A DNA stretch of 62,688 nucleotides, filler included, from Choristocarpus tenellus KU-1152 (taxonomy: Eukaryota; Protista; Phaeophyceae): NCBI GenBank assembly GCA_964200185.2. It is 10 parts of 10 records of this genome, joined end to end, with 100 filler letters (N's around TTAATTAATTAA, not from the genome) between each part and the next. Parts side by side here need not be neighbours in the genome. Positions count along the whole stretch, not along the records: positions 38,231 to 55,718 come from CAXNAD020000667.1; 9 more parts are not named here. One strand, written 5' to 3'. Below, piece after piece: positions 40,326-56,484 of the stretch. Positions within the stretch are counted from its first letter, which is position 1. Every line of letters begins with the position of its first letter. Under the pieces are notes generated by a model. It did not search any database. It had not been told where the DNA came from and saw only the letters and a program-made list of their open reading frames with translations. Both the position numbers and the translations under genes were made by a program.

Positions 40326-43300
40326 TCAGCTAGCTTGTATTGTGAGCATTGTGTTATCAACATCCTGAGGGTTCTCCATATCTACCACAGTGCACCCAAC
40401 CCCTGGCTGATGCACCAACCACCGTAGGGCATAATGCTGTAACGTCTCATCATCCGGGATTACATGTGCTCCACTGGGACAACCTTCACCTGATACGACC
40501 ATGTCCCTGGTTCGCTGGGCACAACTGTAGCGAACCATAGCTCCATACCTCTCGAAGAATGCCTGTTGGCCCAGATATTGTGGGTGGTGAAAGGGAGTTG
40601 AAAGAGGTGACATTGTTTTTAGACTATACAACGGAAACTCTTCATATGACTGATGCTGTGAGGAGGACACAAAAAACAGACAGCTACTAGATTGACTGGC
40701 TACAACAACCTATTTTCGAAACATGTGCTACTTTATAGGTACTATTTAGTTGGAGTGGTATGCAGGTTTACATAGTAGGGATACAAATTCACTGGACTAC
40801 AACATTGGGTATACACCACAACCTCGCCAACAAAAAAAGGGAATATATATATATATATTCCAGTCATTCAAACACAAGCGAGACTTGTGACTGCATAGGA
40901 GCAGAGGAATCAGATATTCCACTTTTAGGAGGACAGTGTAGTCCACAATTCTATCACAACCAGACCAGTATATACAGCATTGCCACACTGACTAAGAAAC
41001 ATTTCAACCACCACCACTTCACACCCATGTATCATATGACAACATGGAACATCCACACCCAATGACATTACCATCTAGATTTCTGCTCACACTGCAAAAA
41101 AACAATACTGGAGAGATCTAAAGTGTGTCCTCCACCTAGAATACCCCTAAGATACTACCAATCCTCTTGCCATAATGCCCACTTACTCTGAAGATATTTT
41201 CTCTGCCCTTCCAGAAGATACAGACCTTACATATTACCCATTTATCCACTACCTGTCTCAACAGAAGAAGACCTGTCAAAATGATCACAACAAATCCATC
41301 CGCCCATCCATCCACCCATCCACCCAATCCAACCAATGCAGTAGTAACAATATCATGGCGTTTTCATGCACTCACTTGGAGTATATCTGCAGATGTTGCA
41401 TCTAGCCCCTCAAACTTATTGTTTATCATGGGTGTGATGCTTCCCGCCAGCTCAACCTCATAATGCTCAAAGGATGTGAAGCTCACAAGTTGACTGTTCA
41501 TGTCCTTCACCAGCTGCTGGAGAAACCGGCAACCCTATGCCATAACAGTCAAAGCGGTGGTTGGGAATGTGTGTGGTGCCATAGGCACTACCAAAGAAGA
41601 CATACAGTGCACTGAAGTTGAAGTCAAGTCCTCCCCTGAATATATAAGCGGCAATTCAGAACATGAACACCACAGATGCCCCGCTTGAGGGATCTCATCA
41701 TGTCTGTAAACTGTTTGTCCTGTCAAGCCTTGCATCTGCACCTGTATGATGTCACTTTCCTCCTCTGTGAGCTCCCTTCCTTCAGGAAGATCCATTGTAA
41801 AATGCTCCAGAACCTGTCTGCGGAAATGCCCCCACCAGATTATCATCAAAGCCAAAGTCAAGGTCAAAATCCAGTGTTAGAATGTTACACCTTGCCCACA
41901 ATGCCAAGACATGGCAGTTGTAAAGTATTGGCACTCAAGATGCACTATACAGATGTAGGAGCTGTACCTGCATACATCCATGTAATCATGAGGTAGGTCT
42001 CCCCTAAGAGCATCATCCACCAGCTGGAATGTGCCATTTGGCATTGATGCAGTCAATGGGTGACATGCCATTACCTTCACTTATTTACATTGAGCAGTGG
42101 AAAGCAATTGGGTGAGAGTCATGACTGTCGGGGAAGCTGGTGCAAATGAAGGGTCACCTGTAGCAGTTTTGTGTATTGAGGCAGAGGTACAGGAAGGAAA
42201 AACAGGCATTCACCCTATTTCCTGACATGGTTGCGTCAGCCAAATGCATTTGCAATTTCTACCTCGGGTATAGTGCGGAGTGTTCAAAACACTACAACAT
42301 GCCTATTCTTGATCGTTGCCAAGGAAACATTGTTAAAGGGCTTCTAGTAAGGGAGGGCTCACTCTTATGCCTGCTGCTTCCATAGATGGTGCTTCCTTCA
42401 ACCCGGTAGTTTCCAAGAGATTTGCTGGCATCTGCACAATCTTGAATGAATGCCTTGACGCAAGCGAGATAAGGTCAGGAGAGGTTGAGAGGTCAGAGAA
42501 CACAAGCTTGGTATAAATCTGTGTACTGTTTGGAGCAGCATACATAGAAAGAGCACTGTCCTAAGTCCAAGAGAAGGCACACAGGCAATGCAAGATGATG
42601 ACATTGAAAGGTATCAGATGTCAATTTGAACATTTAGTTTCAATAGTGAATTCGTTGTACATGCATAAGATGGTAGATTGCCATAATGCTGCATATACAC
42701 AGTACTGTATTGTTTTTGATATGTTTCGATTCCTGATGAGGACAAGAGTACAGAGCATTTCAGACTAATGTATAAAAAACATATTCGTTTTACATGCTGA
42801 AGATTGTAGATTGGAGTGAAAGTATCTTAGAGGGTACGGATTTTTCCCTGTTTGTCCATTTGGGGCTTGGCTTCCCATGGGGTTTTTTATTACATTTTCC
42901 TACTCCAAAATGTTTTGGAATAGGTCAAATGTCTACATTATGAAAAGGTCTGTCCGGAACAAGGATACTGACACTTCCTAACAAACACGATAGCCAAAAT
43001 TACATCAAAGTCGCAACGTTGGATTTTGGCCCCAAATGGACGTGGCCCTGCCCTCTAAGATACTTTGGCTCTTGCCATACATACTGCATATACACAGTAC
43101 TGTATTGTTCTTGATATGTTTCGATTCCTGATGAGGACAAGAGTACAGGGTATTTCAGACCAACATATAAAAAACAGAAGCAGACTGCTGGAAGGGCGAC
43201 AGAGTAATCGGAATTTTCTTTCCCATTACACTTACGTGACCTTCCCTCGCCTCTTGGCTGCCTCTCTGGCACACTGAACAAGTGCTTCCCAGGAGATGTG

Positions 43301-44690
43301 CAATGGTTCTTTGTCTGGAAGCGACAACCCTGTGCTGCTTACACCATAGGCTCTGACTTGACCCTCATCCACTCTCTCCTCCATTGCCTCAAACAATGAA
43401 GTCATGTCTCCATAGAACGCCTCCCTGACCTCATTCAACTGTATCCTGGTAAAGGGTGCCACCACTCCAATTCCCTCTCCATCATTGCCACTTGCCATGG
43501 CGCCTGCACTTTGAAGTCTGTGAGTCAGGTGGTGCTCAGGGTTTTCCACCAGGAAACCTTCGACAGTCTTTGTTTGTAGTCGCTGGAGAGAGCGTTCCAA
43601 CTCTTTGCACATAAAATCTGGGTGCATTGAGTGGGATAAGCCAGTCGCTGCAGTCACCATCCCTGGGTGCCTGCCTGAACTTGACTTTGAGTAAACAGTG
43701 GATTGTTGGGTGGGGGTATTAGAAAAATGCAATTAAGGCTGGAATGAACGGGAAATAGACTGCAGAGTGTCGTTGATTAGTTTGTACCCCGTGATTTGAA
43801 ACAGATAAATGCATATACACATATATACATATATATATATATATATATATTGGATACCACTTCCAAAGTGAAGCTGATACCAGTGGTGGGTAGGTGAGGG
43901 GGAAAGGGTGCGGTTAAGATACACGGGAGTGCAGTCAGAGTTCCGTCTACTCCACCAATCATGGTGACATGGGTCCCTACCTCGACAATTGGAGGATGTC
44001 TTACTACACAATGCTGCCAGAGGCTCTGCAGGTCTAGAATCACATAAAAAACATGCATGGTATGGGAAGAGGAAATGTGTTGCTCTCTGCGCCTCGGTAT
44101 CTTACCACACGCATTCTGCAAGTCTGTCGAGCAAAACAATAAAATAAGTAAGTATGGAAGGCGTAAAAATTCTCACCGATGCATACCCGAACTTCGTCAG
44201 GATTTTCGCTTTCTCATTTCCCTCATCCCCAAACACTTTCCTCACTACTTTTCCGACCAATTCCTCGCTCTTTCCTCCCATATAGTTTGCGTTCGTATCC
44301 ACAACTGCATGTATTAAGGGATAATCGATTGAGGGTGATATGTGTGAAACAATTACTCCAGTCGTAGTCGTACATAGGGCAGTACTTCCCGTGGGTCAGT
44401 GTATTGCACGTAGCACAAACCAATGGAGGCCATGCACTATTTTCTGAAATCAGAGTATCTAGGAAGAGAGTCTTGTGCAGGCACGACGAGTGGGGATGCC
44501 ATTTCAGGACAACTTCAAAACCTACATCATGTTTCCTAACCTACACTACACGGACCTGTAACTCCGCCTTGGAGAGCCCTCACAAGTGCAGCTTCATGCT
44601 CGGCAACACCAAGAGCACATCTTGCTGCTCCAAATCCAACCCTGGACCACACCATTACCTTCCTGGTGTCAAGAGCGCAGTAGTTCTTGC
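40326..44690 (-). CDS. Aldo-keto reductase-family protein; exons 44690-44556, 44304-44177, ~43670-43236, 42453-42363, 42074-41968, 41817-41742, 41534-41376, 40562-40326 (first exon and one junction unresolved)
   Basis: SRVGFGAAR, VDTNANYMGGKSEELVG, LTKFGY, SLQRLQT, AYGVSS, IVQMPANLLE, ALRWLVHQPGV. Confidence 0.88.
42814..43071 (+). mobile_element. MITE family A, complete, in an AKR intron
   Basis: GAGTGAAAGTATCTTAGAGGGTA ... CCCTCTAAGATACTTTGGCTC; TTG duplicated on the flanks. Confidence 0.9.
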
Positions 44691-50211: not shown

Positions 50212-53200
50212 ATGCAGAAGAGAAAGCATGCCGACGATCCATACAATCCTGAAGATGTCATATGTCATGCTGGTAGAAATAGTCAATATCCTGCTGGTGG
50301 GAGTGATGTATACCCGGATAGTCGCATGAGATGGGGAGGATATTTAGATAAGGGTAGAGAGTCCAAGCTGTCCTTGGCGCTGAGTGATCTTCGATGGCTG
50401 CCGGGTGGAAAGCAGGTGGGAGGATACTATCTACCATCTGGAATTTGCCTTCACAAAAAAGAGTAAAAAGACGGACAAATTGAGTGGTGGTACCCGCTAA
50501 TGCGCTATGGATTTTTCGGTACAGTGCCTCCCACCGAGTATCGCCCACTTTTCACGATCCGGCATTACATGTTTGCTGTTCGATCTAACTCGACCAATCC
50601 TTCCATGTAGACTCTCCCTCGAGGGGTACACCTGCAACCAAAGGTACTGGCTCATTTCCTGTGGAGCATGGTTGAAAGACAGCTGATTTGGGAACGACGG
50701 GTGAGGTATGTCGATGAAAAGGGCTCCTCCATAAAGAGCCTGTTTTTCGGGCATTTGTTTTGACATTTTCAATACTGACATGAAGAAATGTCAGCACTTG
50801 TATGGATGCTGCCCCATACGGCCGCCTGAACGACTAATAGCCGAGGAATGCGATGGTATAGGCATGGCTGCAGCCCTCCCTGGACGGATGATGTCATCAT
50901 GCAGAGCAACTTCTTTACCAACGTCTACCGGGAGCTAGATAAGGGTACCATCTACTTTCGATGCAAGCTTCGGGGCATGATGAAAGGGGCTCAGGTTTGT
51001 CACTGTGAAATCAGGTCGTCGCACCAGTTGAACCCCTTGCTTTAGACCTCTATTTCTAGTATTAGTTTGAAGGTGGGATGCTTTTCTTCTCATGCACTTC
51101 AGTAGGGTTGAAGGGCTTTCTTACTCATGCTTGCAGGCACCTACCTGTGTGTACTTGAAGAGCTGGTCTGTTGGTGAACATTCCTCCTCAATGTGCACTG
51201 TCTTGTCTACTGGTGAGGGACAGTGGCACAATAGGGGTGCTCTGCTCTGCAATCTCCTGCTTGATTTTTTTGTACTTTTTGATATTGAGGATGAAGTGAG
51301 ACTTTGTATCCAAGAGCCTAGCACAGGATGACCAGATTTGGCGTCCCTTTACCTGATTCGATTTTGCATCAAATGCTCTCTAATTTGCCTGTTGTGCACT
51401 GTACACTATATGAACATAATTGCTTGCTCTTGGTTTTTCGAAGAAAGCATTCTCCTTTACATATCCTTTCAGTCATGTTACTGGTGTTTTGTGGCATAAA
51501 GGGTTGATTGATGAATGAACACTGGGATTATTGTGTTTACTCTCCTAGACCTGTCCTATTCCCTTGTGGCAACACAAAACAGACCCAACAGGATAGGTGC
51601 CGCCGGTGCCTATGGGCATCTGTGAGCTACCGCCTCATCAACCGGCTGGAAACATTTCGACAATGGAAAGACCGCCTTCCAAGGGAGGAAGAGGTGAGGA
51701 TCAAACATAATGGCAACTCGGAGCAGTTACGGGTTGAAGACAGTCACCTCATTGGTGGTGACAATTTTTTGAGGAGAATAATATGGGTATACCTCATGCA
51801 GAGAACTCTGCACATCACATACTTTATGTTGTGAGGGCATTGAGTGGAGCCTCTTTGCATATGCTGTACCTATCCTTCATTAAGTCATCTTTGTAGTGGA
51901 ATGCTCAGTTGCACCATTGTACTCTGAGTACATAAGAATCTGTGATAGATTTATCAATTGTATGGAGACAGCAATTTTAATGCTAATGGACAGGTGCAAA
52001 TTTCAGTCCCTGACGGACCAGAAATACAATGCCATCTGCGTCCAAGCACATGAGAAGCACACCAACCTGCACCAAAGGTTGCCAATGGTCATGAGGTCAT
52101 GTTAATGTAGCCTCTTGTCATTTAGTAATCTCCTGGATTTATGGTGACCAAACTCTCCCCTACCCATCTCCCCCTGACCTCTTGCATGCTGTAAGCGAGA
52201 AGAGTTTGTGAGGCACTTGTCGTCAGTGAAGAAGCAAGGAGTGCCAGTCTTCACCTGTGCCCACCAGCCTGTTTCTCTGTCAGATTATCGCAAGTGAGAA
52301 GACTCAGCAACTGCCGTGATCATTGTGGCAAAGTTGCACAGTACTTTCCCCCCTTGAAACACGCCTTCATTGACACCATAGGGGAGTTAGAGTAGCAGTG
52401 TCAAGGACGGCCTGTAGTAGACAGCCACCAAACAATGGGTTGTGTTAGAGAAGCTACCCCACAATGGGTGCTCTGTGTGTTCAGGGGGTGGAATGGATTG
52501 AGAGCGGGGCAAGAGATGGCAGTTGTTACAAGCAGGGGAAGAGTGTACTCTATGATTTAGGTATACCTGCCTTGTAATCCAATGTATCCTTGTAAGTGGA
52601 TACACTGGCCTGTTCTATTGTAATCTCAAAGTAAACCGCGTTGTTAAGAGTTTGAGGATATCCCACTGCATACCAGATTTGCAATGGAGTCCCCTCCCCC
52701 TGACCCCTTCCATGGCTGTATCTTTAAACAGCAGTCCCTATCCCTTATTTTCCGCGATCAGAGCCCTCAAAGAGCTTACAGGGGAGGGTAGAGCAGGGTT
52801 GGGGGCCTTGTCAAGCTGCCTCTTTGAGGCAAAGGATCTGGAGGCGTGCCATGCAGCCCTCAGGCTGCTCCCAGGGGTTGGAAAATTCAATGGTTGGCAG
52901 GTGAAGAAGGTCGCTACCATAGCTAGAGATAACCCCACTTGCAGCATTTCCTGCCTTTCACCTTTTTAGAGCAGCATCTGAGAAGGTAGAAGTTTGATAT
53001 CAAGTGTACTTCTTCCAGTCATTTTGGTAGAGTCTTTCAAGGCAAATGACCACCAAGACCTTTTGCTGTTTTATCTTTGACATGTTGGGTCATTGCTGAG
53101 GTTCACCACCAATTTCAGTGCTATCCTGACCCTACTTCTGTTTGTCCTTCTGCCCCTGCCTGATGCAGGTGCTTGCGGATCTGCTAGAGGCAGATGCGCT

Positions 53201-54975
53201 GCCAGCTCGCTTCAATGAGACACAGTGGGTAGCACTAGGTCCAGGAGCAGTAAAGGGTCTCCACAAGGTGTTCAAGGTATGGATAGGCGTGATCCTCCCT
53301 TGTCCACCTTGCTTCTGTTGAGCAGTCGAGTGCGAATATTGCTATCCTCTTCCAATTGGGAGATATCCTATATATTAGTTTAATACAATCGTCAGGAACT
53401 AATCCAACCAGGATGTTTAGACCAATGCGGGCAGTCTGCACTTCTTATAAACCTATCTTAGCCTGAATATTCTTGTGTAGTCACATTGTGAATATCGTGA
53501 ATAGAGGTGAATTACAGTGAATTTATGTCTGTGTGTGTGTGTGCTGTGCCTTTGCGGGGCGGTCAAGGGGATACTGAAAGGTTGAGAAACGACTAAGTTG
53601 ATGTCTTCCATAGTCAATTTATCCTGCTCCTCTTGGTGGCAGATACCACGCCGGTTGGATGATCCACTTCTCCTCCTCTCTCTGGCAAAGATCATTGCAG
53701 ACAACTTGCCAACAATGCTCTCCACTGCAGGGTTGAAGTTCCCCTTATTCCACGGACTCCCCGTGACCCTGAAGGTGCGACCCCTCCCCCCCCCCTCACT
53801 ATTGGGTATGCTGCAAGGACCATGAGGAGAGCTGCTGCATACATAGCCAAGGCACCCTCTGAAGCTGAAGTATGGGCTTGTGGATAGTTTCAATATTCGC
53901 TAGAAGGCAGGTCTCAAATTGTCAAAGCACCCCTTCCTCATACTGAAATATTTTTGTTGCGTATGTGATGAATTGAGACTCCTTTTGAATGGTACTCAAT
54001 GATTTTTTCTTGTCAGTCTGCACTGTCCTTTCTTGTTAGCACCAATCAGCCCTGGCCACTGTTTCCCAATTTCTGCAAGATTTCTCAGTATAGGCAGCAT
54101 GCGAGTCTGCTGCACCTTTTGGACTTCTATCACAACAGATATATATATATATATAGCTATTGAATTTGTTGCGTGATTTGTTGTTGGTGATATTTTTGTC
54201 AGGATAGTTTGCTTCTGGTGGTGTCTATTGATGTTGCCCACCTGTAGTAGTTGCTATGACATGTACAACCCGGCATCGATTAGTTTGTTGGGAATCATGC
54301 TCCCCCCAGCCCCATTCTTTTAGTGGTAAAAGGCTTCTTTGATACGAAAAAATGCTCATGTGAGACATTGTGAGCTAGGCACCCCTTCCATGCACAAAGA
54401 CCTGCACAACAAGTGCAGCAAGTCACAATGCAACCCCTTATTCTGGAGCACTGCCGGGCTTCAAAGGGCTTAAGGTTACTGAGTGTAGCCCTTTCCCACC
54501 CAAACACCAACTAATGCAAATACAGCTCTGTGTCGTAGATCTTCCACATGCATGCTTTATGGCACCCTCTGCTCCTTCCATTCCTACCGCACAGAACGTG
54601 GAGCACTGGCTGTGTGAATTTCACAAGAGGTGTGAGCTGACCTCAAAGTCATGCGGAGGGGTAGGGCGCCGTTTTGAGCATGGTGTAGCCCATTCGTTGG
54701 CCCATGTAGAGCCCATCCTTCTCAACTGGTGCCCTGGCTGCAGTGGGGTAGCTGAGGGTTCTCATCTGACCCCAGCTTGTGATTTATGCCAAGAAATTCG
54801 CCACCACCGTTGCTGTAATATTCTATATTCTGACATTGATGCGTGTGTAGAGGAAGTCTCAGCGGCAGTGTCCGTTAAGAGGAAGCAGAAGCACAAAGGG
54901 CAATGGGAAAAGGAGGGTGGGGGGGGGTGGCTTTGCCCAGAATGCATCAGTTGGGTGGAGGCTCGGCAATGTTAA
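50212..54975 (+). CDS. aGPT-Pplase1 (5hmdU-DNA-kinase-associated helical / amino acid:DNA transferase-like) domain fused to a C-terminal PHD finger, ~463 aa; exons 50212-50415, 50611-50705, 50862-50994, 51592-51693, 52196-52293, 52762-52900, 53169-53276, 53643-53774, 54595-54975
   Basis: All eight introns are GT-AG and phase-compatible (1392 nt, no internal stop). Ordered motifs: ERQLIWERR, PWTDDVIMQSNFFTNVYRELDKGT, YRLINRLETF, FTCAHQ, PGVGKFNGWQVLADL, LGPGAVKGL, NVEHWLCEFHK. PHD: CPGC..CDLC-x4-H-x2-C..WLCPEC. Confidence 0.88.
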
Positions 54976-56484
54976 GCTGTCTGAGAAGGTAGCCTCAGTT
55001 TCTGGAGTAGCAAGCCTTTGCATTGCCCAGGTTGCATCTAGAAGTAGACTAAAGTCCCTATGTCCAGGGTGGAAGTTATCTTTGTTCATTTAGCTTACCT
55101 TGTCTATGGGCCAGCCATTGTATGTTGCCAACTGAAGTATAGGTTGTGGTTGTGACACACAGCACTGCCTCTGGGCCAAGGCAAGTAGAGCCTCTTGTGT
55201 TTGAACACATCATATTTAGATAATTTTGTTATGGTGCCTGTTGAGTGCAGAGCATTGCAGGGCAAAATCTCCCCTCTGAATATACTGTGCTTTTTTTCCT
55301 TTAAAGCACCAGAGACGGGCACCAGCCGGTAGACACACATCATGAGAAGGGGGAGGCAAAGAGGCATGATCTGGACAAAGGGACGTGGGTCAAACCAATT
55401 GAGAGGTGATCGACCTGTGGAGATACCAACACCCTGCCAAACAATATGGCTGCTGACTGAAACCCACCATGACACAAACTGTACATGGATGCCTTCTCTT
55501 CTTCTCAGATTTTGAATGACTATTTTGACTGCAAGAAGGCTTGTGTTGGTCAAGGTTCGGCAGGGCCTTGCATATTCAAACATCTCCTTGCATTAAGAGG
55601 ATAACAACACCCCAGAAAGGGTTGTAGCACTTATGACTGGATGGAATGGGTGGAGAAGGGACTGGGGGGGGGTGTCGGCGTCCGTTTTTCACCCTTTTTT
55701 CGATTTTCACTTTTTTGGNNNNNNNNNNNNNNNNNNNNNNNNNNNNNNNNNNNNNNNNNNNNTTAATTAATTAANNNNNNNNNNNNNNNNNNNNNNNNNN
55801 NNNNNNNNNNNNNNNNNNCCCCCTCCCAGATACTTTGGGTCTTAAGCCAATATGATGTACCTCCCTCAGAAGATTCCCAACCCCTCTCAATACTGTAAGC
55901 GCTGTAATAAGTATATGTCCATATGATTGCTGCCATCATTTCCGCCGCTAATCTTGTAAATCTGTGCAGCAATATGTAACTACAGAAGAAGCCTCAAAGA
56001 AGTTTCCACACCACACAGCACGCTCAAGGACAAGTATATCAAATTACACCCACCCACCCACCCCCCACACACACAAACCAGGAACTAGTCAGAATAGGAG
56101 CTACTATCAGATATAGCCATGGCATTGCTCATTTTGGTCCTCATGTCCAAGCATAAGCGTACACCACAGTTGTCCAAACAAGATTGATACATCGCTTCGC
56201 CTTCCCTTTCAACTCTTGTAGTTATCAAGTTTTTGAGTTGTCTTATTTTCATCCCGACGTTTAACACTTCGGAAACAACCTCTGATAGTTGAGAACCTAA
56301 ATATATAAGCCTGCTAATGGAGCAAAGGGGACAAGGAGTATTGTTTTTCCTTTCTACTGCTGCCATGCTTCTTAGTCGGAACAAGAGGATCCTTTTGCAT
56401 GTGCCGCACTCCTACCTATGTGTGTGCCCACGCTAACACATCCTTAGAACTTGAACCAAATCTGTGAACTCGAATTGCCGCACG

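Follow-up and report, generated by a model that had tools for sequence, protein, structure and literature searches.

Phages hypermodify thymidine to escape restriction enzymes, and this chemistry is well established. Here we ask whether a relative of the phage machinery in a brown alga, Choristocarpus tenellus KU-1152, is a functioning nuclear gene and what its product might do at algal chromatin. The locus occupies positions 50212-54975 of a 62,688-nucleotide stretch of DNA (the window), which joins ten parts of ten records of genome assembly GCA_964200185.2; the part that holds the locus is a 17.5 kb piece of record CAXNAD020000667.1. The original prediction for these positions was a domesticated phage-type DNA hypermodification enzyme, aGPT-Pplase clade 1 (Pfam PF18723), fused to a PHD finger. 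We find a transcribed, correctly spliced, nine-exon nuclear gene whose product is predicted to carry a complete PF18723 domain and, behind it, a PHD-type finger. This gene is a new, expressed member of a known, uncharacterized eukaryotic family and not the first sighting of that family.

Structure and transcription of the gene

The interval 50212-54975 contains no long open reading frame (ORF). We built an exon model on GT/AG splice sites, reading phase and homology, and amended it with read data. Nine plus-strand exons join into an ORF of 1401 nt that encodes 466 amino acids (aa) plus a TAA stop. All eight introns are of the GT..AG type, their phases agree, there are no internal stops, and two codons are split by introns (AG/G, Arg; AA/A, Lys). 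The ATG of exon 1 is the first in-frame ATG past an upstream in-frame stop, and GC content is 0.534 in exons versus 0.449 in introns. Each of the motifs quoted in the original prediction was located in plus-strand frames.

Three public runs of a single study (X1, X2 and X3) cover the locus, and sequence variants are found there in none of them. X1 and X2 show even depth and unspliced contigs, a DNA-like behavior. Contigs of X3 contain all eight GT..AG joints exactly at the model positions, skipping 195, 156, 588, 502, 468, 268, 366 and 820 nt in turn, and the spliced contigs have a depth of 79-122 versus 5-30 across introns. We read X3 as RNA from this exon-biased depth and from the spliced contigs. 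The proposal that nine exons splice into an intact frame is borne out by the phase check and by the eight joints, among them the one that brings the last exon into transcripts (53774/54595). An intact product was also correctly foreseen, although its size is 466 aa instead of ~463: X3 places the exon 3 acceptor at 50862, 12 nt upstream of the motif-based 50874, which adds four residues and agrees with the profile alignment (HGCSPPWTDD).

Two further observations concern the introns and their boundaries. Exon 4 has in-phase CAG acceptors at 51583 and 51592, 9 nt apart; the X3 contig takes the former, and use of the latter would drop three residues. Simple repeats occur in intron 7 ((GT)n, ~53527-53545) and in intron 8 ((TA)n, ~54128-54168); the read analysis passed over 54128-54168 as repetitive.

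A complete PF18723 domain is predicted

Domain, homology and profile searches were made exon by exon. Exon 3 alone matches PF18723 at 36.3 bits (E 5e-9; gathering cutoff 25), and exon 7 matches model positions 183-217 at 23.7-24 bits (E 3.7e-5). PF18723 is currently named HMUDK_hel, "5-hmdU DNA kinase helical domain" (5-hmdU, 5-hydroxymethyldeoxyuridine); aGPT-Pplase clade 1 is its older label, and JGI labels such proteins 'alpha-glutamyl/putrescinyl thymine pyrophosphorylase clade 1'. A profile of 73 homologues matches seven segments, in exons 2-7 and 9, that are strictly collinear (E 2e-22 to 4e-3; Table 1) and that extend the predicted domain over profile positions 5-306 of 331. Single homologues, for example P0002, P0203 and P0176, align by tblastn in five to eight segments that are likewise collinear, exon 8 included. 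Together with the joints in X3, the collinear profile matches show that the exon arrangement is not due to chance, and the above-cutoff match of exon 3 and the collinear coverage place the protein in clade 1, as had been proposed.

To describe residue conservation, each exon was aligned separately to a 37-sequence family profile. The profile has 30 columns with conservation of at least 85%; the window protein is identical in 28 of them and retains all 13 invariant columns. The invariant set examined comprises R, PWT.D, F.N.YRE.D..T, R..N, G.F, D, GPG...G and E..LCE..K, such that the acidic residues proposed as catalytic have not been lost relative to the phage proteins and both the Cys and the Glu of EHxLCE are present. 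The two non-identical columns are one unaligned Leu and a Tyr, immediately after EHxLCE..K, that is replaced by Arg. Ahead of the domain, the N-terminus is unstructured and basic.

A PHD-type finger at the C-terminus

Exon 9 encodes EHWLCEFHK, a 37-residue linker and the pattern C-x2-C-x12-C-x2-C-x4-H-x2-C-x40-C-x2-C, ending in W-L-C-P-E-C. In an alignment of the window protein with the tails of 42 homologues (A1), the seven finger Cys columns are invariant, as are E3, H4, L6, C7, E8 and K11 across the 43 sequences. An insert of 23 residues (exon 9 residues 84-107, with KRKQKHK and a Gly run) is a gap in all 42 homologues and has a predicted local distance difference test score (pLDDT) below 50. 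The Pfam PHD model (PF00628) matches exon 9 at 11.2 bits (E 0.38; cutoff 24) over profile positions 1-31, a sub-cutoff score that we attribute to the splitting of the finger by the insert. The insert-free homologue P0038 scores 20.4 bits over the full PF00628 model, and several other homologues have precomputed PF00628 matches. When the fold of exon 9 was predicted with AlphaFold2 (AF2) from an alignment, the C-terminus adopted a fold like the PHD fingers of BPTF and TAF3. On this modeled fold and the C4HC3 spacing, we accept the C-terminus as a predicted PHD-type finger; the original assignment holds in these respects but falls below the Pfam cutoff. The sub-threshold score and the 23-residue insert also set it apart from the PHD fingers of BPTF, TAF3, Pygo and BHC80.

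H3K4me3 cages of the BPTF type carry a Trp two residues before the His. In the window protein the finger Trp occupies the W-x-C-x2-C position and the residue two before the His is Ile; H3K4me3 reading is not to be assumed, because the cage Trp is replaced. The 'histone-guided' role originally given to the finger is a hypothesis.

A family centered on ochrophyte algae

A search with P0038, which combines PF18723 and PHD, returned 150 proteins at E <=1e-5. Their named sources include diatoms (Fragilaria, Cyclotella, Fistulifera and Amphora) and pelagophytes (Chrysophaeum taylorii and Pelagophyceae sp. CCMP2097 and CCMP2135), along with complete MMETSP transcripts and one copepod record (Eurytemora). 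In at least 74 of 227 proteins the EHxLCE helix is followed by a C4(H/C)C3 finger. The fusion is therefore not a peculiarity of this gene, and the PF18723-plus-finger layout is typical of the eukaryotic branch, which occurs mainly in ochrophyte algae. Members carry, beside PHD, Chromo, BAH or PTM/DIR17-type Tudor domains. Examples are CTAYLR_004073 (P0180, Chrysophaeum taylorii; PHD_2, PF18723 and PHD), KAJ1452598.1 (Pelagophyceae sp. CCMP2097), MHU86_17604 (Fragilaria crotonensis; BAH and PF18723) and proteins of Cyclotella and Amphora (Tudor and PF18723). These relatives with chromatin-reader domains are all uncharacterized. The family is already present in public databases, where UniRef names include "PHD-type domain-containing protein" and "5-hmdU DNA kinase helical domain...". 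Eukaryotic members from stramenopile algae, green algae and basidiomycetes were reportedly predicted by Iyer and colleagues in 2013. The literature searched yielded nothing relevant on eukaryotic Pplase homologues or on 5-hydroxymethyluracil (5hmU) in stramenopiles.

Like its eukaryotic relatives, the window protein has the domain, the invariant residues, the EHxLCE helix and, 25-40 residues on, a C4(H/C)C3 finger ending in W-x-C-x2-C. Unlike them, it has the 23-residue basic insert in the finger and Arg in place of Tyr, and it lacks an N-terminal reader domain. It is a divergent member, 30-55% identical per exon to relatives, and single-exon searches found no near-orthologue. Per-exon identity does not group it cleanly with finger-bearing over finger-less relatives. 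The Fragilaria gene has one intron within the domain, whereas the eight introns of the window gene lie at positions that it does not share; the Chrysophaeum gene is intronless. Since the introns are unshared with relatives, they are an argument that the gene resides in this lineage and a poor guide to how old it is. The idea of a long-resident host gene thus stands as far as eight spliceosomal introns and spliced transcripts carry it, while the introns hardly address its age.

Some database records near this family deserve separate mention. P0182 (Eurytemora carolleeae LOC111713446, 741 aa) combines PF18723 with the same C-terminal finger; an animal may have acquired the gene horizontally, or algal DNA may have contaminated the assembly. 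P0002, the closest single relative by exon identity, is a 248-aa ORF that ends directly behind the GPGA block and lies beside a WD40 gene on a 4.3 kb contig of JGI metagenome 3300045138 (L002); prokaryotic gene prediction has probably truncated a eukaryotic gene here at one of its introns. The top multi-stretch matches in a search with 41 residues from exon 3 (P0001, P0003 and P0060) proved to be chance hits to fn3/SLH repeats and were rejected as relatives.

Phage relatives and their chemistry

Searches with exon 3 (tblastn) identified SP10-like Bacillus phages and PaMx11/Ab18-like Pseudomonas phages. The phage clade 1 proteins, which include the C-terminal half of SP10 gp186 and Ab18 ORF13 (PaMx11-like), share the Pfam family and motifs of the window protein and are ~50% identical to it over exon 3. 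They differ in being either stand-alone proteins of ~290 aa or fused to the 5-hmdU DNA kinase, in adjoining a kinase and a deoxyuridine monophosphate (dUMP) hydroxymethylase, and in having no zinc finger. In SP10 gp186, a kinase domain (PF18748, residues 35-193) is fused to PF18723 (residues 313-598), and the gene adjoins a ThyA-like gene; this fusion of a 5-hmdU kinase to PF18723 accounts for the Pfam name HMUDK_hel. The Ab18 cluster runs in the order PF18724 ADDT, FAD oxidoreductase, GNAT, P-loop kinase, PF18723 and ThyA-like, which corresponds to the published 5-AcNmdU cluster plus a clade 1 paralogue. RefSeq labels SP10 gp186 (L005 3020-4933) a 'terminase small subunit', apparently in error, and the PF18723 gene of Pseudomonas phage PAKlein3 bears the same label.

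Transfer of amino acids or amines onto phosphorylated 5-hmdU was put forward as the chemistry of the window protein's own family; it has been demonstrated for clade 2 only. The enzymes for which transfer of glycine, serine, putrescine or diaminopropane to 5-phosphomethyl-dU is proven, namely M6 gp51, ViI gp247, PaMx11 gp46 (PUGT), YuA Pplase2, 15599 Pplase2 and PhiW-14 gp109, all belong to clade 2 (PF18724, "ADDT"), in which a Cys is the C6 nucleophile and an adjacent Glu, with a Thr, is metal-binding and essential (PMC8989533, PMC11472151, PMC13458397). The window protein appears to share with these transferases the catalytic motif E-x-x-L-C (PMC8989533, PMC11472151, PMC13458397). It differs from them in Pfam family, none of its exons matching PF18724 at E values up to 10, and in having His for the Thr of the metal-binding E-T pair. 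A role for clade 1 in transfer is suggested by SP10, which makes alpha-glutamylthymidine and for which no second Pplase paralogue is listed (PMC5889632); with no other paralogue to act there, the clade 1 protein could be the transferase in that phage.

Feature coordinates and genomic surroundings

The features of the gene are collected in Table 1. The X3 contig from which the 3' untranslated region (UTR) derives is 1099 nt long, has a depth of 119 and runs from the exon 9 acceptor, which would place 641 nt past 55050 if it is collinear with the genome.

Table 1. Exons and other features of the PF18723-PHD gene, in window positions. Profile positions refer to the 73-homologue profile (331 positions).
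Feature	Position	Strand	Profile positions	Content and conservation	Joints in X3
Exon 1	50212..50415	+		Start codon; 68-aa N-terminal region with no Pfam match and no detected homology; KRKH (50218-50229), putative nuclear localization signal-like motif	50415/50611
Exon 2	50611..50705	+	5-30 (E 7e-4)	First helix of the family; ERQLIWERR (50674-50700); both conserved Arg retained	Both present
Exon 3	50862..50994	+	30-70 (own-profile E 2e-22)	Most conserved block of the domain, PPWTDD...FFTNVYRELDKGT (50875-50949); 11/11 conserved columns retained	
Exon 4	51583..51693	+	71-98	YRLINRLETF block; R and N retained	50994/51583 and 51693/52196
Exon 5	52196..52293	+	107-135	VPVFTCAHQ block; split codon AA/A at end; also matched by tblastn with P0002	52293/52762
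Exon 6	52762..52900	+	159-192	Helix-hairpin-helix (HhH)-like LPGVGKFNGWQ (52868-52900); G and F columns retained	Present
Exon 7	53169..53276	+	189-227	VLADL..., W..LGPGA; GPGA at 53238-53249; conserved D, G, P, G and G retained	Both present
Exon 8	53643..53774	+	Spans variable 227-267 stretch	Variable helical segment ending ...LPVTLK, leading into the predicted catalytic helix; tblastn with P0203 and P0200 at 53682-53774	53276/53643 and 53774/54595
Exon 9	54595..54975	+	267-306	NVEHWLCEFHK, linker, predicted PHD-type finger, stop TAA (54973-54975); EHWLCE at 54601-54618; C, E and K retained, Tyr replaced by Arg	
PHD-type C4HC3 zinc finger (predicted)	54730..54945	+		Exon 9 residues C46, C49, C62, C65, H70, C73, C114 and C117	
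Finger insert, lineage-specific	54844..54915	+		Between Cys6 and Cys7; KRKQKHK (54877-54897) and Gly run	
3' UTR, probable	54976..55691	+		End extrapolated; from X3 contig 16	

Upstream, the minus strand carries an aldo-keto reductase gene with introns, in divergent orientation, at window positions 40329-43732. Its exon at 43235-43732 matches PF00248 (E 3.8e-7), a likely C-terminal exon lies at 40329-40670, and the Atlas labels the gene 'Aldo/keto reductase'. Searches with the reductase exon and with exon 9 of the PF18723 gene turned up no close relatives. The ~6 kb between this gene and the PF18723 gene has no recognizable coding sequence. There are no Pfam matches at 44-50 kb or beyond 55.1 kb, and no tRNA or Rfam genes within the 17.5 kb piece.

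Possible roles of the protein

The PF18723 domain of the window protein is probably still an enzyme. We tentatively favor, at somewhat less than even confidence, an enzyme that acts on the C5 position of DNA pyrimidines in the manner of clade 2 and that is directed to particular chromatin by its PHD finger. By analogy to the clade 2 amino acid:DNA transferases, the domain would flip a 5-substituted uracil out of the double helix, and C6 would then come under attack from the invariant EHxLCE Cys. Departure of an activated substituent of the C5 methyl, for example the phosphate of a phosphorylated 5hmU, would be followed by addition of a nucleophile or by resolution of the base. Through its PHD finger the protein would be anchored to histone H3 tails, allowing the modification to be written or reversed in particular chromatin. 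As for ancestry, we infer that a gene for thymidine hypermodification, from a phage or a bacterium, gave rise to the branch and turned into a chromatin protein.

A number of observations weigh against such an enzyme. A kinase, a TET/JBP dioxygenase and a dUMP hydroxymethylase are all missing from the 17.5 kb piece; the same partner enzymes are missing beside the Fragilaria gene, whose flanks are ordinary housekeeping genes, while a look-up at the Chrysophaeum locus gave no called neighbors and carries no weight either way. No modified base of these algae is known in the literature searched. That literature likewise reports no activity for clade 1 proteins, and the in vitro reconstitution of the M6 pathway could do without gp55, the second aGPT-Pplase paralogue of its cluster. 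Within the window protein itself, Arg stands in for a near-invariant Tyr right after the catalytic motif, and the finger is sub-threshold for Pfam and carries a long insert. The library type of X3, which we read as RNA, is unrecorded. The two clades lie beyond the reach of ordinary sequence comparison: searches of the Protein Data Bank (PDB) by sequence with the clade 1 profile or P0038 found no chains, and a comparison of clade 1 with the Ab18 clade 2 ADDT by hhalign gave a sole match of 21 columns (E 0.048, probability 1%), a short, weak alignment that pairs IEHxLCE with VETxLC (EHWLCE with VETILC). Two observations speak instead for a link to the clade 2 mechanism. The Glu and Cys matched in these columns are essential residues in M6 gp51 and PUGT (PMC8989533, PMC11472151), and in a language-model search without PF18723 the nearest clusters were PF18724 and PF18746 (0.92-0.93), and the two clades probably form one superfamily with an HhH-containing helical fold.

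The protein could instead be a non-catalytic component of chromatin, its HhH-like domain serving as a reader of DNA or of a modified base or as a scaffold and its PHD finger bridging DNA and histones, with no new base involved. We regard this as unlikely. Clade 1 is without demonstrated enzymology, Pfam treats the domain as an accessory helical part of a kinase, and both the dispensability of gp55 and the missing partner enzymes fit a protein of this kind; moreover, reader domains (PHD, Chromo, BAH and Tudor) dominate the fusions, and the eukaryotic set contains no catalytic fusion partner. However, none of the 13 invariant columns has been lost although overall identity is as low as 20-55%, a strictness that would be unusual for a mere binding module. 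Among the retained residues are the acidic positions in RELD and PWTxD and the Cys and Glu that align with essential residues of clade 2. The activity of the protein might also run toward erasure or repair, acting on 5hmU or on another oxidized or substituted pyrimidine produced by damage or by oxidation of the TET/JBP type, and either removing the substituent or reverting the base to T/U; this would be maintenance targeted to chromatin and not the writing of a hypermodification. The domain's resemblance to the HhH-GPD glycosylase fold is taken from the literature alone (PMC8989533, PMC11472151). Glycosylase Pfam families (HhH-GPD or other) are absent from every exon at E up to 10, erasure is reported for no member, and the phage genes sit in clusters that build modifications, all of which make an eraser quite improbable.

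The phage or bacterial origin of the family, the failure of single-exon searches to find a near-orthologue, the introns unshared with Fragilaria and the intronless Chrysophaeum gene could each be taken as signs that the locus was inserted recently from a virus or bacterium, lies on a contaminant contig or is a pseudogene in decay. Against these readings stand the eight GT-AG junctions in spliced contigs at 5-20x intron depth, the intact frame with every invariant residue retained, the intron-bearing aldo-keto reductase gene on the same piece and the eukaryote-specific finger tail common to 74 relatives, and we consider an origin of this sort essentially excluded.

Significance

Our analysis adds to this family a junction-verified gene model, reassigns the proven chemistry to the sister clade and shows the finger to be part of a conserved tail. 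A conserved, intron-bearing, transcribed gene with a reader domain fits a chromatin-directed DNA base-modifying activity, and the gene is a good candidate, not proof, for a DNA base chemistry as yet unknown. The literature searched contains no experimental study of any member of the eukaryotic branch, and a verified, expressed gene model with a predicted catalytic Cys provides a handle for direct tests of clade 1 function. A conceptual analogue exists in kinetoplastid base J, a hypermodified thymine made via 5hmU by JBP1/2 and a glucosyltransferase, with chromatin-level consequences (PMC13229309); the folds and chemistry of that system are unrelated to the window protein. We speculate, while judging it rather unlikely, that the nuclear DNA of ochrophytes, this organism included, contains an undetected hypermodified thymine or uracil that is installed or removed after replication by a PHD-tethered clade 1 enzyme at histone-marked chromatin. 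If true, this would constitute a new eukaryotic epigenetic base, with a writer domesticated from phage anti-restriction chemistry.

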